Positions 8,732 through 60,729 of a stretch of 64,000 nt of DNA are shown here, in pieces. The notes under the pieces are model-generated. The model was not told the origin of the DNA, ran no database searches, and saw nothing but the letters and a program-made list of their open reading frames with translations. The translations under genes and the position numbers were made by a program. This DNA comes from Lepidodermella squamata (lineage: Eukaryota; Animalia; Gastrotricha), in assembly GCA_047495785.1 (NCBI GenBank), contig JBLDXI010000009.1, positions 558,001-622,000 of the forward strand, read 5' to 3'. Each line of letters opens with the position of its first letter. Positions within the stretch are counted from its first letter, which is position 1.

Positions 8732-10703
8732 TAAGCATCTATCTGGCCATCACTGACTATTATTCGTTACTTACTCGATAGCTAATGGAATAATCCTTGG
8801 AGTCGTTAATATTTTGGCAACATTTTCCACATCGCCCATGATCAATGCTAGCGGGTCATTCTCCTGGAGTACCCTATCGATATTTGAGTAATAAACAGTC
8901 ATAAATAGGTTTTCGTACGGCCGTTTTATTTTGTTCAACGAGCTGTCCGATTGCTGCAGAACTATTAACGTAATAATGATTAATAATAACTGCTTTAATA
9001 AGTTTATACATTTAAAAATCAATCAATAGAGTCGGTCTATAATATTCGCGATCGCAATGTAATACAATCTTTCAACATACAGCGAAAAAGTACAAAAGTT
9101 GGATTGACATAATTTGTTTGATGATTTACATAAAATCAAAGCGCGAAAACGGTTCACATTATCATAAAGAGATGACAAAGTCAGATCTGTTATAGCATTT
9201 TTTCGTGACCAGATTGTTTGATAACCACACTATGCCCGCGCTGACAGGCAAAACAGTGAGAGCATTCAAAAAATAATAATAGCAAATATCAACATATAGG
9301 TACTAGACGACAATGAAGCCAGTGACACCCAGCGACGATCCTCCACGTCAGATCCCGCAGATCGGCCAAGAAGCATAGTCAAACCACAGTTTTGACGCTG
9401 ATTTCGCAGTCAATGTAGCTTATTCAGCACATACACGCAGGCAATCGTGTGTTTTTTGGTGGGTTAGAAAGTTTTCATAGCGACAATGCACAGTCATTAT
9501 TTTTACATTTAAGGCCACGACAACGCAAGGTAACTGAGAGGCGAGACCCGTTGTTCATTAAGGCCGCGACGCGCTTTCGTTTAAAAATCAAACATTACGG
9601 TACGCAAGAGACTAAGTAGTAGTAACTAAGATGTACCGAGCGAAGCCCAAATTAAACATCGACTAAAATCGGCTGAATTATACTGATATTATCTGGCTAG
9701 TGAAGCTTATTCATTATCGTATACCAAAGCAAGTATTTTCAGAATTACTGACGCTGAGTTTGACAGCCCTCGGACATTCATTTTGACAACACATCACAGG
9801 AGTAAAAAATGTTATAGTAACCTCATGTAGAATAGCTGCTGTCGATACTTGATAAGATGGCGGCGTAAAAATAAGCACAACCCACGACACGATAGAACGA
9901 TGATTAGTGTAGTATGAAATAAAGAAAATTGTCAAGAACAGACACCAGGATGTCGTAAAAGCCGATTTCTCTTCTTCGCGAGATGCCAGACTATCGATGA
10001 GATTGATGTAATCAATATAAGGTGAAGAAATATAAAATAAAATGCACCAATCGTTGCATCAAGCGGCAACAAAATAAGTCGAGATCGACGTGGGACATGG
10101 CACAATGCTTTCTAGAAGAGATGACGAGAAATTTTTTGAAATATCTGACTAGCTAAACTCTGAAGGTAGTCGTGCAGCTGGTTATTATGTATATACTCGA
10201 GCAGAAATGATTCGAGAATGAAATTTAGCACGATTTACAATGGCAGCTCATCCACTTTCCTCGCCGGCTTTCGATCAGGCCAATTGTTTCAATTTGATGA
10301 TGTGCGAAAGATGAGCTTCAAGCTCGCTATGAGAAAGCTTGCAACTATAATGTGTATAACAACTAACGTCGAGTGTTCACACGAGAAAAAAAACTATGCA
10401 GTAAAATCAACTTGAACAAATTTTGCATAATTGCTTCGGCAATGAATAAGCATTTACAAATGATGGAACAAGAAAAATAATATTTACAAAAAAAATCACA
10501 AGACAATCAGACATCACATGCGTATAAGGAACATGAAGCTTCGCGATGGCACAAACTGTGATCTAAAACGTACAAAATTGCACGATCAGGTATTGCTCAA
10601 AAAGTAACTAATTATGTAATATAGGAATTTCGCTCTACGACATCACTCGATTACAGATTTACTCGATGCTGGCACAAGAAATGTATGTGAAGGTAGGATC
10701 GAT

Positions 10704-10726
10704 AGAGAGAGAGAGAGAGAGAGAGA
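10704..10726 (+). repeat. (AG)n microsatellite in the syntaxin 3' region
   Basis: About 11 uninterrupted AG units. Confidence 0.9.
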
Positions 10727-11062
10727 TGAAAGTGAGAAAAGAGATCGACTGAATTTTCGAGACCTGAAATAGTCATTTCCCGAAGTTGATTCGATGTAAA
10801 TATCATGTAAATGGTTCATAATATGATGCGAGTGAGTGGTATAGGCTCGAAGCACATAAGCGAACCAACTCGATAACAGGCGAACATTGAATGCAATGGC
10901 GCTTGAAAAATAAAACAGACTAGAAAATACGCAGTCTAACATCCACGAACAGAATAAAGAATTCTCGTAAGCAGCCGATTGCGCTCGGGCTGATAACATT
11001 GTCATCAAGACGAATAGCATGGCATTAGCTCTGGCAGTTGATGTGAAGGGAAGATGAGACGA

Positions 11063-11140
11063 CTACAAGAAAAATCCGCCGAGAACACCGCAGAGGACCA
11101 GGATGAGGACAGCAACACAGATCATGATCATAATCTTTTT
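11063..11140 (-). CDS. STX1: STX1 terminal exon 6c: canonical short TM anchor
   Basis: TTACAG|[25 protein letters not shown]. Confidence 0.9.
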   Translation of the reverse strand, partial: KKIMIMICVAVLILVLCGVLGGFFL

Positions 11141-14100
11141 CTGTAATTCAAAACACGAAAAGGGACATTTAGCATATATTCATCAGTAAACTATCATTTC
11201 TACCACAATTTGTTACGTTGAGAAAAAGATCTCTACCCATCACCCATGCTGGTGCACCCGAAAATGTTACCTGTGTCGATATTGTTAGTTTTGCATTGGA
11301 AGCATGTGATTTTTTTGCGTTAATTGATATAATTGCACTCGTTTACAACATTTAGAGCTTCACTGGAAGCTCATGACGATTTACACGATTAACTTCTTTT
11401 TTTTTATCTGCATTATTATTGTTACAACATCGAAAGACGATGGTTGTGTGTTCTAATGATGTCACGTGGACGTCACTGAGGCGTGCGCCCGGTTACCACC
11501 ACCGAGATTAGCTACAGGTTCAACTTGCCTCCGGCGACGAAGGTAGATAACACAAGATCACCCATTTTCAATGAGTAATGGCATCATCGGAAACCGAAAA
11601 ACCCGCCGATAACAGCAGCAAGAATGACAATGAGCACCGTTACGCAAATGATGATCATTATCTTTTTCTGTAATGAGTCAGCGCAAAAACAACACGTGTC
11701 ATTAAAATAGTGGCGAACGAAAATGGAAATGTGAAAAATGTAAAATCGTTTGGCTACACACATCCAGCTGTTCTAGTATTCAGCCACCTTCTGCTCGCCC
11801 AGTCACGTTTCATCGATGAGGATGAAGGCGCGACGAGTGAACGACTGGATGTTCGCAGCAATTTTTTGAAAAAAAAAATTATAAAACAAAAGACAACACG
11901 GAACAAAGACAAACTTCGATGACTTTCATTATCCTGAATACAGTCAACTTTATCATCACTGATTTTTCTCGTTTTTTTTGTAGATCAACAAAGAGCTTCG
12001 CGATTCCATCAACAAAACTTCGCTCGTTCACCTCAGATATACAAAACGTTACAGAGGCGCGCGTGACACAGATCCGCCGTTTCATTCAAAAAACAGGCTG
12101 CAGACTTCACCAAGAATACTGATTACTATTTTGTTTCCACTATCATCCAGTATATAATATAACTCTGTAAATAGCTTCTTCTGCCAGTTGAAAAAGTGTC
12201 TAGCTTTGACATGGGACAATTTGTTACAAACATTATCACAACACGCATCGTATAACCAAAGGTAACACATGGAAATGCTTGGCCTGGGAAATCGTTTAAG
12301 CAGCGAATAGTAATTAGCTCAAATTAACAGTATGTACAGCGATCACCGAGTGAAATATTAAATTGCGCTGCTTTAGAGCTCAGAACCGATTATATTTTCA
12401 TATTATGTGTAAAAGCGAAAGTTATAGGCAAGCGTGTTCCGCGAAATTTCAAGGTGCATGTGAAAATAAATATTGAGAAAGCATTCATTCTCCTGGTAAT
12501 ATAGCAGATATTACTAAAAGCTCAGCAGTTTTGAGCACCCATTCGGCACTAAATCTACGATAAATCGCCGTGAAAAGTAGAGATTCAGCAGCCAGCTTGG
12601 TATGTACAATAAAATTATATCTGGTAAGTCATGTCGCGCGGCTTTGAAATAGATGGGCACCTGCGTTTAGAGCAAGCGGCACAAATTTACAACATGAACG
12701 GACGACAAAAGCAGCACATTTGGGAAACATTTAAAAGCAATACAACAGTGTCACAACACTGGGAACATGTCATCTACAAGTCGTAGGCTATTGAGTGATT
12801 AGGAGCGCATGCCGTTCAAGGCGACTATTTGAGGGTGTACTTTCCTTTGATGTTTTAAACATTATAAAAATATATTGTTTAGCGCTGATTCTGTTTGCCT
12901 TTGTAGTAGAATATATTTTATAGCTTTGATTGACTGAGTAAAAAACGGGAGATCAGCGACCAGCGGCCACAGTCGTAGAATTGGCCGACGCCCTGACTAT
13001 TGTCGTTGCTGCAGCTGCAACGGTGGTTGTACTTGCTGATGGTGTAGTTGTGATTGGGACTGGAACTGTGACTACAATGGTGACTGTAGATGCTGTCTCC
13101 GAACTGCCTTTATTACACACGCCAGTTTTGCAAACTTCAACGGCTATTACGATTGCAGCGATTATTAGAGCGGCTAGAATGACACTGACTATGATCGACC
13201 AGCATATGCACTTTTTCTACAGGCCAAACAGCGGTTGTGGTAGCAGCAGCAGCAGCAGGTTTGAATTGACATCGAACAACAACGGTGCAAAGACAGAATA
13301 GGAAAAACAAAAACACAAACAACATAAAGCTAAATTATCATTAAAAACTAAAAAAGCGCTAATTCAATTTGAAAATCCCAAAGCCATCGATAATTTCCGA
13401 ATCAATAGAAAATTCCCCATGCATCAATAATCGATTTCCAGTAAACAAATTACTCCCAACCTTATCCACCCTGAAATTAGCGTTAAATAATAGTAAAAGC
13501 AAAAAAATATAACATGCGTAAAATTAGAAAGACAGACATTTATATGACAGACAATTGACAACATGAGCGCATGCAAAAAGCGAAAAGCTGCATCATCGCG
13601 CTGGCACCCATCATGCTCCATTAGTTTTCCCGTACTCGCGCAAATTACTTTTAGCTTATTATCTTATTCGCCGATATGTAAACGAAAATGACAGCGACCG
13701 CCGTGACCAAAACGCCGGCGATGATTATAAGCAAAATCCAGAATTTCTAAACACAGTCTTCTGATTAGCATTATTATCGCGGCAAGATCTTGTTTTGCCA
13801 TTCAACGGGTTTACACGACAAATATCAATATTTATCACAACAAGGAACCTTATGATGTAAAAATGTCGACGGACCTTTCTAGCTTTACTCTGATATTTGA
13901 TGGCTTTTTTAGTATCTTTAACGGCGGTTTCGATATAATCTTGGCTTTTCAAGACGTTGCTTTCGATCTGATCCACGAGTTCCCCCTTAACGCCATTTAA
14001 CCAAACCGCGACGAAACGAAAAAAAAGAAAAATATTAGTTATATGACGAACCTTTCTTGCAGCACTCTGATAACGAAGGGCCTTTTTGGTGTCTTGCACG

Positions 14101-15914
14101 GCCGTGTCAACGTACTCGGCCGATTTTTCGACGTTGAAGTCGATCCGGTCAATCATTTCACCCTAAAACGAGTGCAATTCGAGTGTGGAACGATCAATCA
14201 GCCGTAGATGGAGATGTGCATTGACGGCGACGTCATAGAGATGAAATAAAAACACACAACAGAATTACATGATGCCAAAAGTTTCGGAATTTTGCTTTCT
14301 TTCTACCCGATTCAGTTGAACATGAAAAGTTTGCGTCTATTCAGGCAACAAACAGGCCATGATACAGTGCCAAGGTCTGGTGTGAGATTTCCACGGTCTC
14401 TAAAGCTAATATGTTGCCCTCGTTCTATACAACTGTGAAACAGTTGAGCTAGTAATATGCACTCGATTCATGCAACAGAGCGCGTGTGCCCTAATTAGCA
14501 TCGCCCTACCACGAGCTATCACAACGTTGATAGAGCCCAGGCGAAAGCCCGAGCTCAGTCTAACTATCATCGTGTAACTGCGTGTTTCTTGGCTATCAAT
14601 TGACGACCGGATGCTACAACGCGTGCCCGCCCGGGGAGGACCCTGATTGGGAAGAGAGGGAGGAAAAATGACTGGAGACAAACCTGACTTTCGACTAGCA
14701 TCGCCATATCCATGAACATATCGTGTAGTTCTTGGATAGACTTTTCTAATTTTTTGATATCACCATGTCGAGCCTCAATATCGCGAAGCATTTGCCGGGC
14801 TTGTTGAGTATCCATCAAAATCTATCAGAAAAAGCAATGCCATTTAGAAGCTGCCTTGATATCAATCCAGTTAACTTACGCCTTGGGTGAAGGCCTGAGG
14901 GGTACCTGACTCGATCATGGTTTCAATTTCGTCATCGGTAGTCGATTTCCCAGCTGTAATAAAGAAAATTGTCAAGTTTAGCAAAATGAAGCGTAAAGGA
15001 TATTGGACATCAATTAGGTACAACAAAAAAGGCCCCATAAGGGTCAAGCGCTAACTGTATTCGAGTTGACGTTTAATATTGGCTTTGCAGCGTTCTCTGA
15101 ACTCGCACTGGGCAGTGTTGTAATCGGAAAGCACTTCGCAGAGTAGCCGGTGCATGGTCATATGCTGGGCGGACGATCGAATGGCAGGGCAAAACAAAGT
15201 CACAGACAACAGCAAGGTATGAAAGAAAAAACAAACGATAAATACGATAACAACAAAAATAGGCAAGCAACGTAGTGATAAAATAATATAAATCAACTAA
15301 TGACTAAGACGGTACAACACAAGCTCTGAGGCGTTTAAAACCTACATATTTCCATCTGGCGTTTAATGCGCTCTTTACACCGATCACGGTAGTCTACTTG
15401 AGCCTTATTGTAGTCATTCATCACTTCGATGAACTTGCGCGAGATCGATGAATACTACATTTGGTGATTTGGGGGTTTCATATGAACAGCTTAATAATCA
15501 ATGGCGCAATTCAAGTGTTGGATAATTTACCTGAGTTTTACGAATACGGAAATCTGCGGACATTTTCTGTCCCTCTTCCTCCTTTTCGATGTTTTGCTCC
15601 ATCAGCTTCAATTTTAGCCGAACTTTGTTCGCGTTTTGCTTGATTTCTAGCATAATTTGGTCGAGCTCCTCCTTAACGCGGTCGTCGGTCTGAGGCGCGG
15701 AAAGGATGTCTGAGTGTTTCCGCTTCACCTCCTCGACTTGCTGTGCGATAGTGTCGATCATGCCGCGGATTTGCTTCACTTGCTCGAAGAAGTCTTCCAT
15801 GAAATTTGCGCCACCGCCCGCACCACCATCGTCCATTTGCACGTGGACATCGTCAGCGCCGAGCGCATCCTCTGCCTTGGCGGCAGCTTGTAGCTGTTGC
15901 AGCCTATCACGCAT
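11063..15914 (-). CDS. STX1: Syntaxin-1 with mutually exclusive internal exons and three alternative terminal TM exons
   Basis: Exons 15914-15531, [15454-15346 or 15164-15056], 14953-14880, 14821-14684, [14162-14052 or 13985-13875], [13216-12953 or 11667-11584 or 11140-11063]. All are GT-AG and phase-compatible. N-peptide MRDRL, Habc [14 protein letters not shown] motif [32 protein letters not shown]|GEMIDRI. Confidence 0.95.
11584..11667 (-). CDS. STX1: STX1 terminal exon 6b: canonical short TM anchor
   Basis: TTACAG|[27 protein letters not shown]. Confidence 0.9.
   Translation of the reverse strand, partial: KKIMIIICVTVLIVILAAVIGGFFGFR
12953..13216 (-). CDS. STX1: STX1 terminal exon 6a: TM plus ~60-aa Thr-rich extracellular tail
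   Basis: TAG|[87 protein letters not shown]. Phase 0, begins AAAAAG like 6b/6c. Not in the ORF track. Confidence 0.8.
   Translation of the reverse strand, partial: KKCICWSIIVSVILAALIIAAIVIAVEVCKTGVCNKGSSETASTVTIVVTVPVPITTTPSASTTTVAAAATTIVRASANSTTVAAGR
13875..13985 (-). CDS. STX1: STX1 alternative exon 5b (SNARE C-half), 111 nt
   Basis: AAG|[37 protein letters not shown]|GTCCGT. Confidence 0.88.
14052..14162 (-). CDS. STX1: STX1 alternative exon 5a (SNARE C-half), 111 nt
   Basis: TAG|[37 protein letters not shown]|GTTCGT. Confidence 0.9.
15056..15164 (-). CDS. STX1: STX1 alternative exon 2b (Hc helix), 109 nt
   Basis: CAG|[36 protein letters not shown]|GTTAGC; same length and phases as 2a. 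Confidence 0.88.
15346..15454 (-). CDS. STX1: STX1 alternative exon 2a (Hc helix), 109 nt
   Basis: TAG|[36 protein letters not shown]|GTAGGT. Confidence 0.9.
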
Positions 15915-16208
15915 TTTCAGCTAAAGCTAGAGATTCTATTGGGTGAGTAGGGGCTGCGGTGACGTAAAGATCGGTCCAGCCGAATTGGACGGGACTCGGA
16001 AATGCAGAAACGGGAGGTTGCTGTGAAAACAACTCGACGAGTTTAGGGTCGACAGCTTCGACGAAAACTCATAAAAGCAATCATAAAATACTAAAAAAAT
16101 ACAAATATGGAATGATAAATACGTCTTAATATCTTGAAAATGCGAGCTCCGAAAAAGGCGCAAGCTCGCATTGATGCATAGCAAATAGATGAAACTGCGA
16201 ATTGCAAG

Positions 16209-17570
16209 CTAGAAGGATGCAAAAGTTTGATTCATTGAGCTCTCATTGATCGCGCTGCTTTCAGAGCTGTTCGAAGTTAGGGGATTTAAAATATATTTCC
16301 ACGCAAGCCAAACCGCGATAGCGGTTAGCATGAGCATTAAAGTGACTAAAATGGCCCAACAAATTAATTTCTTCTGTTAGATTTAAAGAAAGAATTAAAA
16401 GAATTAAGCTTCAGAGAATATAAGCACAACCAAACCTTAATTAGCGAATTATGATAACGAGTTGCTTTTCGCAGAGCCTGTAGACCGCTATCCACGAAAT
16501 CAGCTGTCTTGTTCACTTGAGCCTCTATTCGGTCAACCACGTCACCCTTAATACATACATCAACGCAAGTCTATACGTTAGACTTTAGTGTTATCTACCT
16601 GATTTTCTATGAGAATCCTCATGTTTTGGAAAAGATCATGAAGTTCCAAGATAGACTGTTGCAATTTCTCTAGATCTTTGTGTCGCTCTTGGACATCTCG
16701 CAGCATTTGCATGCTTCTTTCTGGGTCGAGTAGCAACTTAACGCAATAAGGGCTGAACAAGAGTGAGACTTACAATTACAACTTACTCCCTTGATAAAAG
16801 GACTAAATCGGCTGGGATTGTCGACCAATTCTTCGATATCGGATTCTGACAAACGTTGACCAGCTGTTGAATCGGTCATAAACAATGTAATGCCAAAACA
16901 ATACAAGGATTTCATCGATGACCAACTTATTTCAAGCTGCCTGACAAATTTTTCCTTAGACTTGATACGATGCGCATCTTGAATTTCGTGATAAGCAACC
17001 ATCACATTGGAAAACGTCCGAGAAAGAGTGATATACTAGAGAAGGAGGAAATCGCTCTATGAACACGCGAGTAAAATTTCGAGATATAGGCAAACCTGTG
17101 CTTCTTTAATCCGGAAATTTGCACACGTCCTGTCCGGTGATTGCTCCATTTCATAGTTCATTTCTAGGAAAGAGCTAGCAAAATAGCCCAACAAAGAAGG
17201 GGAGTTTTACTTTTGAGAGCTCCCAAGACTCTGTTTGACGAATGTCTCATTTCATTCATATGGCTATCGACCTCAGCCGACAAATCTGAGCCAAACATCA
17301 TCGTTAGTGGGCGTTTGATTAGTTAAGGTTCTTACTATTGCTACTATTTGTGTCCACCAGCATGGCAGTTTGCAATTTCTTGATCAAATCGACAAGCTCG
17401 GTCATTCGATCAATTACACGAATCAAGAGCCTGACGTCTTCAAAAAACTCCTCCATGAAGAGCTCCCCCACGTCGACAGTGTAGTTGAATTTTTCCAGGT
17501 CGTCATCACTACGACCTGAATCGTCGCCACGTCTAGCGGCCTCGCGCAACTCATCTGTGCGGTCCCGCAT
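16209..17570 (-). CDS. Syntaxin-1-like paralog b (8 exons), TM plus tail with N-glycosylation sequons
   Basis: Exons 17570-17336, 17285-17211, 17163-17096, 17035-16927 (109 nt), 16863-16787, 16736-16599 (138 nt), 16546-16436 (111 nt), 16373-16209. Motifs MRDRTDEL, FMEEFFEDV, ERHKDLEKLQQSILELHDLF...ENQ|GDVVDRIE. Confidence 0.9.
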
Positions 17571-17729
17571 GCTTCATCGATGTTAAAATGAAGCCGGCTA
17601 AAGATCGGAAAATAATGCGAAAAAATGCTGGAAAACATCGATTCGACTACGAATCAGCATCGCTTTCTCTTGAAAATACAAAAATGATCTTGCAAGCCTT
17701 CCTTAAACTATAATATTATCATGACGCAG

Positions 17730-19082
17730 TCAGCTAGGCGTAGTGAGCGTCGGCGGCATTGCCGTATTGAAAATCGAGTATGGAACTGGTGCGACGGCAG
17801 TGACGTCTCCGGTTTTCCGAAAAATCGGCGTAAGATAATGTAGGGCGGTCAAAACAACGGCACACACCGCCAAGAGAATAAATACAATGAGTATAGCCAG
17901 GCAGCAACAACGCTTCTGTAACAACAACACGGCGGTTAAAAAATCGACTCTCTCTATAAAATTAATCGCCAATCGTCACTTGCTTTGGTGATTCGTCTTT
18001 TGTGGACTTCAGCTTTTGCAGTTTCTTTCGTCGCAGATTCAACCAAATGATCAGCTCTATCGATAAGTGCTTCGATCTACAACAGCAACACTGTTGGCGT
18101 TTAAATGATGCCGATGAAACGTACGTTATCGATTTTTTCTCCAGTGGCCTCAATCAACAACTGGTACTCGATAAATATATCCTTCAAAAGTCGAATATCG
18201 TTCTCTAGCTTAACAAGATCCTCGTGTCGCCTTTGCACAATTTTGAGGATAGACTGCTGATCAGTTTCGAAAAAACCGCCGCTAGATGTTGCAACCTCCA
18301 GAAAATAACGAGGGGCCATGACAGGATCGATTACAACATTGCGACCAGCTATTAGCAAGGCTTAAGAATTCGCCGTAAATCATACATTAGACTCATACTT
18401 TTCAAGAGAACATCGCGATGGGTCCTTTCGGCCGACTTCTTCAAAAACTCGTCCCTCGTGGTATTAAAGTACTCCATGGTATCAGCCGCTGTCCTTTTCA
18501 AGGTGTCAATATGCCACTGGAACATGCCAGCCTCCCGAATACTACCAGTAGAGTCCGCTGTTTGCGCAGATCTCGATGCTAGATTAATAGCCATTAGGAA
18601 GAGATGGTCATAATAATGAGAAGTAAGAAACCCTCTAAGTCCTTGATCTTCGACCACGCTTGAGAAAATAGCTGCGAAATTTCATCGTGGCACCGAGTGA
18701 TCTCATCAAGTGCGACTGTTGGTAACATTTGGGGAAACAATAGCGGGCTAATATAATTAAAGAAACCTTTGGTTGGCGGTGTCTTCATTAGGTAATCATC
18801 CTGGGGGGTTTTCACTCGATCCACCAACGACCGAATGAATTCGAAATCCTGACGAATCGAGCTAACTTGAGACAAAAAAGCGCGGAAAGCATTAGATGAG
18901 CCCAGAAGAGGAGTGCCAGGAGTTGGAAAGACTGTTTCATCATGCGATGAGCTGCTAATTTCCGAAAGGCTCTTCTAAAATGAATTAATTTAAATGAGCA
19001 AGACGTGATTAGATGAACCAACAGCCTGTATGTTTGACTGCCGAGCGGCCTGCAGCTCGATTAGGCGATCTTTAACCACCAT
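17730..19082 (-). CDS. Divergent syntaxin-like paralog c (multi-exon, GC-AG last intron)
   Basis: MVVKDRLIELQ N-peptide; RRHEDLVKLENDIRLLKDIFIEYQLLIEATGEKIDN|IEALIDRA SNARE-like motif; terminal exon KRCCCLAILIVFILLAVCAVVLTAL (17915-17730). Confidence 0.8.
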
Positions 19083-21399
19083 AATTTTAGAAAGCACCAG
19101 CCAAATCACATTACGCTGACATAGCTAACATGAAATCCTACACTTAAGACAAACTTAAGCATGAATGTTAAGTGATTAATAAGAAAATGCGTAGGGTCAG
19201 AGTACGTTGCACTCCAATTACAAAATAACCATAAACCACTCTGGGTGATTAAACAAGACGCCCACCAAAAAGGCGCAAGGTAGAAGAGTCACCGCGAAAA
19301 AACATAAGCTCTTGATATGCATAAATTATTAGGGCTTGTAAACATGATCTCATCAACATAAGCGAGAGATGCCACCTAAATAGTAGTGGGAGCGATATTA
19401 AATTAGGGTAATATATAAGTAAGCAAGTGTGTAGACGTGAATCTACATGATACGCGTTCTGAATGCTGGTGATTAAAGTAGCAGCTATGTTTTTACGACG
19501 GTAGCTGTTCCATCTGCTAAAAAAAATCGTATTAGGTGAGAAATAATTCACGAACTCGACGCATCATCAACTGCAATTATTTCCGAGCAAGTATATAAGA
19601 ATTGAAAATGGCAATTCTCATTTTATATTTTGGGAATTATAAAGTTTAATGAACGTAGTAGACTTTAGCATGAGTGGTTGGGTGAACTGCTGTACGCGAA
19701 TATAAATACGCAAGCCGGTAGAAGAGGTTCCACATTCTCGGCAGCAGCGGCGGCGGCGTCGGCATCAGAACAAGAAAAAACTGAGTCAGCAGAAAAGTCG
19801 AATAAGACGACTACCACACATGGGCACGCGCATACGCACAAACACTGACGGTCACATATGAATAATATAGTGCAGATATAAGCAAACGAATAGACCATAC
19901 ACATGCATGCACACACATAATAACATATTATAAAACATCAATACATGCATGCATCTAGCCCTACATATTCAAACGAGAAGCCGGAAGAGGGAAGGCTATG
20001 GTCGATAGCATGCGCACACGAATGTGATGTCAGACACTGCGTGGCGAATATCGAATATATATATACATATATATATATTATGGCAAAGCAACGCGCAGCA
20101 TAGAATAACAGAAACGAATATTGCAAAAGGAGACACACAAGACTTTTACAAGCAACGGCCTGCGCTTGACAATATAATGCGACAGCGACCGGCGAACGAT
20201 CGATAATGCCGCTCATGCGGATCGATAGTTGCTTTCGGTCGTGAGCATAACTCATATTCGCATAACGGCACGAAGTATTCACATTGCGTGAGTGAAATGT
20301 AATACATAATACGGCATAAATTTGAATATTTCAGCTGAATAAGAACAATTAGAAAATAACAATTCAATATAATAACTTGCCGAGGATCGCGAGGACAGCA
20401 TTTAATAAAGCCCGCAAAAAATAGTTGTCATCGTTAACTTGAGCACCTCTAATTGAAGTGGTTTCGAATCACCGCCCGCAGTTATCCGACCAATCACGAC
20501 TCAATGCTACAATCACACTCCAAAAGTGTACAATTATCAAATATCAAAAATATTGTAGAATAATTTAGTTAGCTCACTCTTATCTTTCCTAAAAACAAGG
20601 TTCAAATATCTGACCAGCGTGAACAAAACAAATCACGTCTAAGAAGCTCATGGTGACCCTATCGAGTCGCATTGTTAAATGCCACGCATTATCTCTCGCT
20701 TGGACACCCGAAAATGCCAAAAATCTGACTGAATCGTAGTCGAAAATATCATGGTCCATAAAAACAACAATAACTTGCCTCATATAAATATTTAGCGTAA
20801 CGGCTATTATCAATCAATAGCTATTTGCACGACAAAGCTTTACGTAAATATAATGTTAAATTCAACATCCAACGAACAACGAATAGGAAAGAGCGCAGAT
20901 TCCTTCTAATGGGTTTCATTAATTCACTGTTATGGCTACGCATTATAAGTCACTTGGTTTAGGCTTGACTTAGACAGACAGTATGTTATCTTTTTTAAGG
21001 TAAAGCGCCGGATAGTTCGGGAAGGGAAGTTGTAATTTTTACTGAAGTACAGCATGCGTCTGATCCTATATAACGCAAGGACCAGTCCGAAAATCAGGTA
21101 CCACGCATCTTCAGCGTTAAATGTTGGATTGGGCTAAAAAACCGTCTTCAAATCGTCTCAACTTGACAAACTAAATGGAGTTTTTAAATGAGAACAAGAG
21201 CGGCATACTTAATTCTTCCTGTAGATATCAATCAAACATTAGGTTTATCAGAGCCACCAACCACCAATTACAATTGACAATAAATAAGTAACTTGATGTA
21301 TGGTGGATTAACATAATTGACGTTTATATCATAGTCATGTACATGTTGCTTCGAAAGAATAGTTGAACAGAGAACAGTGAAATTGGATATCTTTCATTA

Positions 21400-58552: not shown

Positions 58553-58767
58553 CCAAGCAGTTAGAAATTATCTGCCATATGTGTTTTTTCAATAAAAGTT
58601 CGAGTTTCTTCTAGAGATTTTGACGGGTCTCACGATGTCAATACCCCCTTATTTTTGCGTATAGTTTGAAAGTGCTATCTTATGATGTTCATCTACCGGT
58701 AAATAGTCTCTTAAAAATATTTGGTTTATTTGCTTCGAACATTCAACAGCTATTTTTTGAGGCGACG

Positions 58768-60729
58768 ATGACGGCGGCGAAAACATCTGACGCCACTGTT
58801 GCCGTGCTGTATGCTACGCAGACTGGTGTCTCGAAGTCGATTGCCGAAAAGATTGTTGAGCTATTATCAGGAATTTCTATCGCCAGCATTAATATTCATA
58901 GCTTTGACGAAATATCAGTCGAGCAGATGTGTTCATTTCGCATCGCCATTATCGTTTGTAGTAGCACTGGTCAAGGCGACCCTCCTGAATCCGCTTCAAA
59001 GCTTTTTCGGCAATTAAGACGCTTGCTATCTGAAGATAAAAAACGACTTGATCATTTACGCTTCACTATTCTTGGCCTAGGTGATTCTAACTACCAGACG
59101 TTTGGAGCGTTTCCAAAAACTTTACATAAGACAATATTGAGCCTCGGAGCAACTACTTTTTACGATTTCGCTCTTGCAGACGACGCGGTTGGGCTTGACG
59201 CAGTTGTTGAACCCTGGTTGGCTGGAATAGCATCCGCAACTTCAAAAGAGCTTGGCGCTAACCCGCTTGATAAAGTAGAAGACTTATCAATCAATTTGAA
59301 AGCAATGAGTGGCATCATTGACGGCAAGCACGTCTTGACTGTTGATCACGACATCAAAATTCCGGAAAAGGGTCTAAAGCTGCCGTCGCTTCCGCCAGCG
59401 GCTCTCACAGTTTCGTTCGGCAAGGACGAAACAACTTCAGAAATAACTGGTGAAGATTTTGCGAAACAATACTACAAGCAAAATTATTTTGGTTCAAGTT
59501 CCCCAGTCGTGCACTTGCCAGTATTGGGTGCGAAAGTTCTAACTTCTCCATCTGCGTTGAAACCTGTTTATGAAATTATACTAAATGGCTCTGAGCTACC
59601 CACTGTGGGAGATCTCCAACCAGGAGATTCCTTCAGTCTTTTGTGTCCAAACGATTCTAATGAAGTTGCTCAGCTTATTGAGAAGCTTGGACTTGCTGAT
59701 GTAGCCGATTTCTCTATGGAATTGTCACAGAAGGTTCCGAGCCACTTGCAATGCAAGGAAACGGCTTTGACGCTACGGTATTGCTTACAATATTGCCTCG
59801 ATATCCGTTCAGCGCCGAAAAAAGCCTTTCTGGCTTTGATGGCATCACTGGCGACTGATGCAAATGAAAAATTTGAGTTGCAATACTTGTCAAGCTTCGA
59901 GGGCAGCCAAGATTTCTCGAGTTATATCAGAGAGGCACAACTTTCTTTGTTGGACCTATTTCTGCTTTTCCCTTCAGTGAAATTGACGGCTTCTCAGCTG
60001 TTGGATAACCTGCCGCCTCTGAAGCCGCGGTCCTACTCCTTAGCAAATTGGCCATCATGCTCGCCTGAAAAATTACTGCGCTTCGCGTTTTCCGAAGTGT
60101 TCTTGCCGCAAGTTGACTCTCGGCGTCAATACGACCGGCATGGGGTTTGCACGCATTTCTTGTTGAGTGCAGTCACTTCTATAAATAATGGGACACCTGT
60201 CTCCTTACCGGTATTCACTAGAACCGTTCAAGCCTTTCGCTTGCCAGCTGAAATATCAACCCCGCTAGTGTTTGTAAGTGCTGGAACCGGCATAACGCCC
60301 TACTTGGGATTTTTGGAATATCTTGCTGACAAGAAGGCGAAGGGTGAATCTTTAGCGCCAGTTTGGCTTTTCCACGGTTGCCGTAATAAGGACGATGACT
60401 TTGTTTATCGCGCAGAGGTTGAAAAATGGGTCAACAATGGATTGATTGCGAAACTAGTGTTGGCTTGTTCTCGGCAGGATCCGCTTCAAGAAAGTGGCTC
60501 TCGGACTTACGTCCAACATAAATTGCTTGAAAACGGGAAAGATTTGATCGATTTGAATCCACCTGCTATAATTTATGCTTGTGGGGACGCGGCAAGAATG
60601 GCTCCTTCGTTACGTGAAGCTCTCATTGCTATTGTCAAAGAGCACACGGGCGTTTCGCAAGAGGAGGCCCTCTCCGTGTTCAAGCAGTGGACGAAAAGCG
60701 GTCGCTACAAGGAAGATGTTTGGCGATAA
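58768..60729 (+). CDS. MTRR: Methionine synthase reductase (intronless diflavin reductase)
   Basis: YATQTG, STGQGDPP, LGLGDSNY, MTRR-type DDAVGLDAVVEPW, RSYS, AGTGITP, terminal DVW. Confidence 0.92.
   Translation: MTAAKTSDATVAVLYATQTGVSKSIAEKIVELLSGISIASINIHSFDEISVEQMCSFRIAIIVCSSTGQGDPPESASKLFRQLRRLLSEDKKRLDHLRFTILGLGDSNYQTFGAFPKTLHKTILSLGATTFYDFALADDAVGLDAVVEPWLAGIASATSKELGANPLDKVEDLSINLKAMSGIIDGKHVLTVDHDIKIPEKGLKLPSLPPAALTVSFGKDETTSEITGEDFAKQYYKQNYFGSSSPVVHLPVLGAKVLTSPSALKPVYEIILNGSELPTVGDLQPGDSFSLLCPNDSNEVAQLIEKLGLADVADFSMELSQKVPSHLQCKETALTLRYCLQYCLDIRSAPKKAFLALMASLATDANEKFELQYLSSFEGSQDFSSYIREAQLSLLDLFLLFPSVKLTASQLLDNLPPLKPRSYSLANWPSCSPEKLLRFAFSEVFLPQVDSRRQYDRHGVCTHFLLSAVTSINNGTPVSLPVFTRTVQAFRLPAEISTPLVFVSAGTGITPYLGFLEYLADKKAKGESLAPVWLFHGCRNKDDDFVYRAEVEKWVNNGLIAKLVLACSRQDPLQESGSRTYVQHKLLENGKDLIDLNPPAIIYACGDAARMAPSLREALIAIVKEHTGVSQEEALSVFKQWTKSGRYKEDVWR

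Follow-up and report, generated by a model that had tools for sequence, protein, structure and literature searches.

The 64,000-nucleotide stretch of the gastrotrich Lepidodermella squamata genome analysed here (contig JBLDXI010000009.1, positions 558,001 to 622,000; hereafter the window) carries a complete syntaxin-1-type gene on its minus strand, with the ATG at 15914, and the segment 13216..12953 of that strand is very probably a genuine, conserved alternative last exon of this syntaxin-1 orthologue. Spliced after exon 5a, this exon, here termed 6b, swaps an anchor that ends 0-3 residues past the membrane helix for a helix followed by a low-complexity tail of ~60 residues. Syntaxin-1 is the textbook tail-anchored t-SNARE and, to our knowledge, work on its biogenesis through GET/TRC40, on its fusion-pore helix and on its clustering all presumes that nothing lies beyond the membrane's far side. 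As the gene described here illustrates, syntaxin-1 is not always a simple tail-anchored protein. The exon had been proposed earlier from the DNA letters (the sequence-only reading) as an unlisted terminal exon at 12953-13216 with a tail of ~60 residues, and translation reproduces the reported peptide exactly; its description as hidden holds relative to a bacterial-style list of open reading frames (ORFs), and not otherwise.

Use of exon 6b was assessed by placing the contigs of four public runs (X1-X4) on window positions 10700-16200. X2 proved to be unspliced DNA. X1, X3 and X4 contain spliced contigs and are therefore RNA-derived, whatever their labels. All three contain the junction 14052->13216, which skips 835 nt and reads CT..AC on the plus strand, that is GT..AG on the minus strand, with depths of 92 in X1, 5.4 in X3 and 2 in X4. 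The sequence-only reading depended on the acceptor at 13217 being used, and it is used in each of these runs. A single 495-nt contig of X3 joins 14733-14683, 14161-14052 and 13216-12883, corresponding to exons 4, 5a and 6b plus 70 nt past the stop; it differs from the window solely at 13094, in a third codon position, read as synonymous. The X4 contigs differ from the window at 4/96 and 3/55 positions, so this run represents a relative about 95% identical to the window and using the same junction.

The canonical alternative is also expressed. Terminal exon 6d (11063..11140, minus strand) encodes a canonical anchor and is joined to exon 5a in X1 through the junction 14052->11140, at a depth of 102. 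Since the depth of exon 5a in the same run, 211, roughly equals the sum of the 6b and 6d junctions (92 and 102), about half of the X1 transcripts carry 6b. In X3, coverage of exon 6d is zero, no 6d junction occurs in X3 or X4, and the sole terminal junction in these two runs is that of 6b. In whole-animal RNA, 6b is thus at least comparable in abundance to the canonical form and not a minor form. Coverage continues past the 6b stop codon through a 3′ untranslated region (3′UTR) of about 1 kb (11939..12952, minus strand), represented in X1 at 11939-12098, 12139-12479 and 12535-13126, with depths of 75-126, and in X3 at 11972-12556. Past ~11939, coverage falls to zero until 6d (X1 depth is zero at 11252-11803), which identifies 6b as a true terminal exon with its own ~1-kb 3′UTR. 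A gene on the plus strand was rejected, because every junction reads GT..AG on the minus strand; the plus-strand ORF at 12981-13301 lies antisense to low-complexity coding sequence.

Exon 6b comprises 87 codons and a TGA, with no internal stop. Its first 28 codons (13133..13216) encode KKCICW, a juxtamembrane motif combining basic residues and Cys, followed by a single membrane helix. In the spliced product the context reads ..AARKKKCICW and then the helix, giving the polybasic stretch and single C-terminal helix typical of syntaxin-1. Hydropathy analysis returned one strong membrane segment, where the Kyte-Doolittle mean over 19 residues peaks at 3.37. AlphaFold2, run on exon 6b with an 11-row anchor alignment (A1), predicted a helix at residues 2-30 with a predicted local distance difference test score (pLDDT) of about 90, the remainder being coil at pLDDT 47-67. 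The 59 residues beyond the helix (12956..13132) form the tail, which opens with C-x-x-G-x-C and continues as a Thr/Ser/Ala/Val/Pro-rich stretch containing, overall, 15 Thr, 10 Ala, 9 Val, 7 Ser, 3 Pro and one N-S-T. Ser and Thr account for 37% of the tail, and for 42% together with Pro, in keeping with a Ser/Thr/Pro-rich disordered segment; since Ala and Val are also frequent, its composition is that of a weak mucin. Two other interpretations of the tail were ruled out: a second membrane helix, as its hydropathy reaches at most about 1.1, and a glycosylphosphatidylinositol anchor signal, as the C-terminus is not hydrophobic.

To compare the exon across a larger evolutionary distance, we used L001, a 12.8-kb metagenome contig carrying the whole orthologous gene. 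It was reached via P0001, the one close protein (92% identity, ENA metagenome assemblies) found in a search with the exon-1 ORF. Window and L001 differ at 72% of the synonymous sites of exons 2a, 4 and 5a (proportion of synonymous differences, pS, 0.72, that is, saturated), versus 0.3% of nonsynonymous sites (pN 0.003), exon 5a being 100% identical as protein; for introns and UTRs, the alignment is no better than with shuffled sequence. L001 keeps all four terminal exons (6a-6d) in the same order. Its 6b (11273-11546) follows ..tttgtag and encodes KKCICW, a helix, C-E-S-G-G-C within a 62-residue tail and, about 80 nt past the stop, an AATAAA is found. The first 28 residues of 6b are identical at 18/28 positions (BLASTP E 4e-10). 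The tails alone share 21/57 identities, with a global alignment score of 81 versus 22 +/- 11 for shuffled sequences, none of 1,000 of which reached it. Conserved features of the tail comprise the Cys pair, VT[IV][IV]V, TTTV, TTI, the overall length (59 vs 62 residues) and the position of the stop. With a pN of 0.42 and a pS of 0.70, the tail evolves rapidly, though not freely. The frame beyond the membrane helix, on whose conservation in relatives the sequence-only reading also depended, is hence kept in L001 despite saturated synonymous sites. So are the Cys pair and the Thr/Ser/Pro-rich character that it had described (52% Ser+Thr and 8% Pro in L001, 60% together), along with the predicted disorder. 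The N-S-T sequon that it had listed is present in the window and is not conserved, the L001 tail having no Asn at all.

Two further syntaxin-like genes lie head-to-tail upstream on the minus strand, gene B at 16209-17570 and gene C at 17730-19070. The terminal exon of gene B (16209-16373) encodes a helix and, beyond it, 28 residues that include three N-x-S/T sequons; that of gene C (17730-17915) encodes a helix and 36 further residues, in which KTG and VAPVP recall the 6b tail. A paralogue upstream of the L001 gene likewise ends in a helix plus 27 residues. As genes B and C and the L001 paralogue are all tailed, extended exoplasmic ends appear, from their sequences, to characterise the family in this lineage.

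To act as a SNARE, the protein must have its Habc and SNARE domains in the cytosol, and 6b supplies only one hydrophobic segment; therefore, the tail is exoplasmic, and the product belongs with type II membrane proteins and not with tail-anchored ones in the strict sense. The ribosomal exit tunnel holds 30-40 residues, and the Oxa1-type insertases GET and EMC move tails of up to ~50 residues (PMC13261788), longer or more hydrophilic exoplasmic tails requiring Sec61 (PMC13261788; PMC8998515). At 59 residues in the window and 62 in L001, the 6b tail lies slightly beyond these limits, so that insertion would probably proceed through Sec61 or a mixed route, with the length being borderline. The 6b product would accordingly not be handled like canonical syntaxin-1. 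Judging from its composition, the tail would form a disordered stalk, probably O-glycosylated, and the Cys pair plausibly closes a small, membrane-proximal disulfide loop. At the cell surface, the tail would most likely modulate the residence, sorting or clustering of the t-SNARE and not the chemistry of zippering, which is the least secure part of this proposal.

A bolder version of this proposal holds that, in this animal lineage, the main syntaxin-1 isoform, taken to be broadly expressed, and the two tandem paralogues have all left the tail-anchored class and are Sec61-dependent type II surface glycoproteins, whose Cys loop and Thr-rich stalk act extracellularly. If true, loop and stalk would link sites of exocytosis with the glycocalyx or matrix, or else determine apical residence, and a plasma-membrane t-SNARE would have gained an extracellular function. 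We regard this version as rather doubtful.

Quite unlikely, in our assessment, is the view that the tail is a tolerated, essentially neutral extension, arising when a stop was lost and in-frame ACN/GCN repeats expanded, with only the helix and KKCICW being of importance. It presupposes that the exoplasmic side of a t-SNARE is unconstrained, and it accommodates the low complexity and predicted disorder of the tail, a nonsynonymous evolution roughly 100-fold above that of the core (pN 0.42 vs 0.003), the unconserved sequon and the runs of Thr codons in L001, which suggest replication slippage. An open frame of this length is also not extremely improbable given the composition, with a chance of 8% in the window and 4% in L001 for the tails' own base composition, or 2.6% and 0.6%, respectively, for that of the 3′UTR. 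The joint chance of two open frames, however, is about 0.02-0.35%. Moreover, length, stop position, C-x-x-G-x-C, VT[IV][IV]V and TTTV survive where synonymous sites and introns are saturated, as does a codon periodicity in which 56-63% of the tail codons of both species have C at position 2 (56% in the window). The tail alignment lies 5.4 standard deviations above shuffles, pN is below pS and the paralogues keep tails too, all of which speak for a tail under some constraint.

Sequence features upstream of the exon suggest how its use may be regulated. The acceptor AG (13217-13218) is preceded by a 111-nt AG-free tract (feature 13217..13329, minus strand) that is 68% pyrimidine and 45% T. The sequence-only reading had pointed to a U-rich, AG-free tract of ~110 nt; the tract exists, and it is ordinary for this gene, in which AG-free zones of 95-130 nt also precede exons 2b, 3 and 5a. 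We therefore rejected it as a special signal. Within the intron, a conserved GU-rich element, UGUUUGUGUUUUUGUUUUU (13303..13328, minus strand), shares 19 identical nt with a block at -63 in L001, in an intron that is otherwise unalignable; its local alignment score of 40 was reached by 0/300 shuffles (maximum 35). Nearer to the acceptor, 26-42 nt upstream, lies a (CUG)5.7 repeat (13242..13258, minus strand). Its length is polymorphic, the DNA run X2 carrying a 6-nt deletion in the CTG/CAG repeat at 13242. By analogy with Caenorhabditis elegans unc-64, we propose the GU-rich element as a candidate site for a CELF/UNC-75-type splicing regulator, and the repeat as a further candidate regulator site. 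In unc-64, exons 8a and 8b encode neuronal and non-neuronal anchors under the control of the CELF protein UNC-75, acting on UG-rich intronic motifs (PMC4946901). By the same analogy, 6b may represent the form used generally outside neurons and 6c/6d those of neurons, with exon choice being set by a competition between splicing and polyadenylation via the GU-rich element and the CUG repeat.

It is very improbable that the 6b transcript is a mere regulatory by-product that lowers 6c/6d output, its tailed protein being unstable or poorly inserted and of little function: ahead of 6c/6d, 6b is indeed the first terminal exon in strong use, with a long 3′UTR of its own, a ~60-residue tail is awkward for both the GET/EMC and the signal recognition particle routes (PMC13261788), and the conserved intronic elements point to a regulated choice, yet frame, Cys pair and helix are kept at the protein level, which a decoy exon would not need, and 6b is the dominant or only terminal form in X3 and X4, so that without it little syntaxin-1 would be left there.

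Several points weigh against reading 6b as a conserved exon with a meaningful tail. The tail is 37% identical between window and L001, as opposed to 100% in the SNARE exons, it is low-complexity, its N-sequon is not conserved, and much of it may, from its sequence, be loosely constrained. The relatives compared are one distant (L001) and one close (X4), and use of exon 6b in L001 is presumed from its sequence. The depths given above are assembler word depths, a rough guide and a poor measure of expression. The assignment of neuronal and non-neuronal forms and the CELF site are drawn by analogy only. The tailed protein is known here from DNA and RNA contigs alone, which, together with the fast evolution and low complexity of the tail, also limits its significance. 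Finally, a search of 1.84 billion representative proteins with the 6b tail exon gave 0 matches at E <= 0.001, a search of 90% clusters gave 0 matches within a length window of 48-152 residues, which excludes full-length syntaxins, and metagenome locus scans, queried with either the tail exon or exon 1, gave 0. The first of these results is uninformative, given the shortness and low complexity of the query and given that clustering at 50% would leave a tailed isoform represented by a canonical one. More generally, full-length isoforms were not to be expected from searches with the 87-residue exon. In Pfam, the tail exon had no match. A language-model feature search with exon 6b returned clusters of pneumovirus G-type glycoproteins (0.77-0.80) and a rotifer cluster of hypothetical proteins (0.82), all below the reliability threshold.

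The identity of the host gene is clear from its remaining exons, all on the minus strand. Exon 1 (15531-15914) matches the Pfam Syntaxin family (PF00804, E 3.9e-16), the top matches among solved structures being those of squid s-syntaxin (E 4.3e-36) and of rat syntaxin-1A (E ~1e-29). For the SNARE motif of exon 4 (14684-14821), the matches are s-syntaxin (E 2.5e-18) and SNARE chains of syntaxin-1A (E about 1e-13); the second half of the motif is encoded by exon 5a (14052..14162), to which both 6b and 6d are spliced. Exons 4 and 5a, spliced and translated, include ..LVESQGEMID.., the Gln of which we take to be the central-layer residue, after Q226 of rat syntaxin-1A. Exon 3 (14880-14953) is, like exons 1 and 4, delimited by junctions. 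Between exons 1 and 3, exons 2a (15346-15454) and 2b (15056-15164) are mutually exclusive and both used. They measure 109 nt each, 2b having two extra Cys and being more diverged, and their junctions were found at a depth of 130 for 2a (15531->15454, 15346->14953) and 85-90 for 2b (15531->15164, 15056->14953).

Downstream of exon 5a, the gene offers at least two terminal exons that each encode a membrane anchor and are joined to 5a, with junctions for 6b and 6d, and with 6a and 6c supported through conservation in L001 only. Candidate exon 6a (13657..13746; homologue L001:10881-10982) would encode an anchor with a short tail (KFWILLIII.. plus 6-8 residues) and has a depth of about 10 in X1. 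Exon 6c (11584..11667; homologue L001:12256-12339) encodes a canonical anchor with 2-3 residues after the helix and has zero depth in X1; the homologue of 6d lies at L001:12676-12753. With 0-3 residues after the helix, 6c and 6d have the short tails of tail-anchored proteins. All four terminal exons start with Lys codons directly after the AG, and any exon combination with any of them yields one open frame, of 297-359 residues. Exon 5b (13875..13985), an alternative to 5a, has a low word depth and is kept at L001:10683-10793 (pN 0.095, pS 0.76). Neither 5b nor 6a showed a junction among the runs placed on 10700-16200, both being of low depth, and their joint use may be confined to a rare cell type or stage.

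A few further observations concern the same gene. In L001, about 67 nt unaligned to the window (9180-9246) interrupt the equivalent of exon 1, and the ORF P0001 stops at 9249; from its sequence, this segment resembles a short additional intron that one of the two lineages has gained or the other lost. In the intron preceding exon 3, the DNA run X2 has about 17 differences clustered at 14983-15017. The 3′UTR of the 6d transcript includes a (TC)n/(GA)n microsatellite at 10700-10760; X1 contigs break at it, with a loose end TCTC.. at 10842, and the repeats at 10700-10737 were skipped in contig placement. An Rfam scan of 10000-20000 returned no family. Elsewhere in the window, at 58666-60729 on the plus strand, a single-exon ORF encodes a 687-residue diflavin reductase with flavodoxin, FAD-binding and NAD-binding domains. 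It resembles methionine synthase reductase, and its best named homologues, from molluscs, bdelloid rotifers and Plectus, are only 32-35% identical, which indicates that the animal lineage of this genome is poorly sampled. A feature search with an ANKRD13-like ORF of the window matched chordate clusters only, and the window's own proteins are absent from the protein collection searched.

A natural, abundant and conserved tailed syntaxin-1 isoform, made beside canonical isoforms from one gene, represents a ready-made experiment. It could serve to gauge how much exoplasmic mass a Qa SNARE tolerates, to reveal the insertion route that takes over at the ~50-residue boundary and to reveal whether the choice of anchor exon sorts syntaxin between cell types or membrane domains. 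What is new here is the long exoplasmic tail on a syntaxin-1-type protein; the literature, which we covered incompletely, yielded no description of such a protein. Anchor-exon choice and luminal SNARE extensions are each already known, the former from the syntaxins unc-64 and syntaxin 2 (PMC4946901). As a rule, SNARE helices stop no more than about one residue from the luminal face, and a survey of SNARE helix ends found real luminal extensions only in VAMP7, VAMP5 and Sec20 (PMC13748404).

Among known systems, the closest layout is that of C. elegans UNC-64, a syntaxin-1 orthologue in which alternative 3′ terminal exons after the SNARE motif likewise encode different anchors. The gene described here resembles it in having several anchor exons, with 6b lying proximally and having its own poly(A) site and the canonical 6c/6d lying distally, and the GU-rich intronic element upstream of 6b parallels the UG-rich CELF sites of unc-64. 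In contrast to UNC-64, whose isoforms differ in their hydrophobic anchors and for which no long exoplasmic tail is reported (PMC4946901), there are four anchor exons here, and 6b adds about 60 extracellular residues. Mammalian syntaxin 2 (epimorphin) is similar, by description, in having C-terminal splice isoforms and a discussed extracellular role (PMC4946901); the exposure proposed there, however, concerns the whole protein and not a dedicated exoplasmic tail behind the helix. VAMP7, again likened by description, has a Cys pair just after its helix, with a predicted disulfide (PMC13748404), comparable to the C-x-x-G-x-C of 6b. The extension of VAMP5/myobrevin measures ~22 residues, and that of Sec20 more than 100, with an HDEL in plants and fungi (PMC13748404). 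Unlike the protein described here, these three are R- or Qb-SNAREs and not Qa.IV, and none is described as Thr/Pro-rich or mucin-like. In its layout of a signal-anchor helix followed by a Ser/Thr/Pro stalk, the 6b product finally resembles type II mucin-like surface glycoproteins, which, however, have short cytosolic N-termini in place of a 270-residue SNARE machine, so that the likeness is one of architecture and implies no homology.

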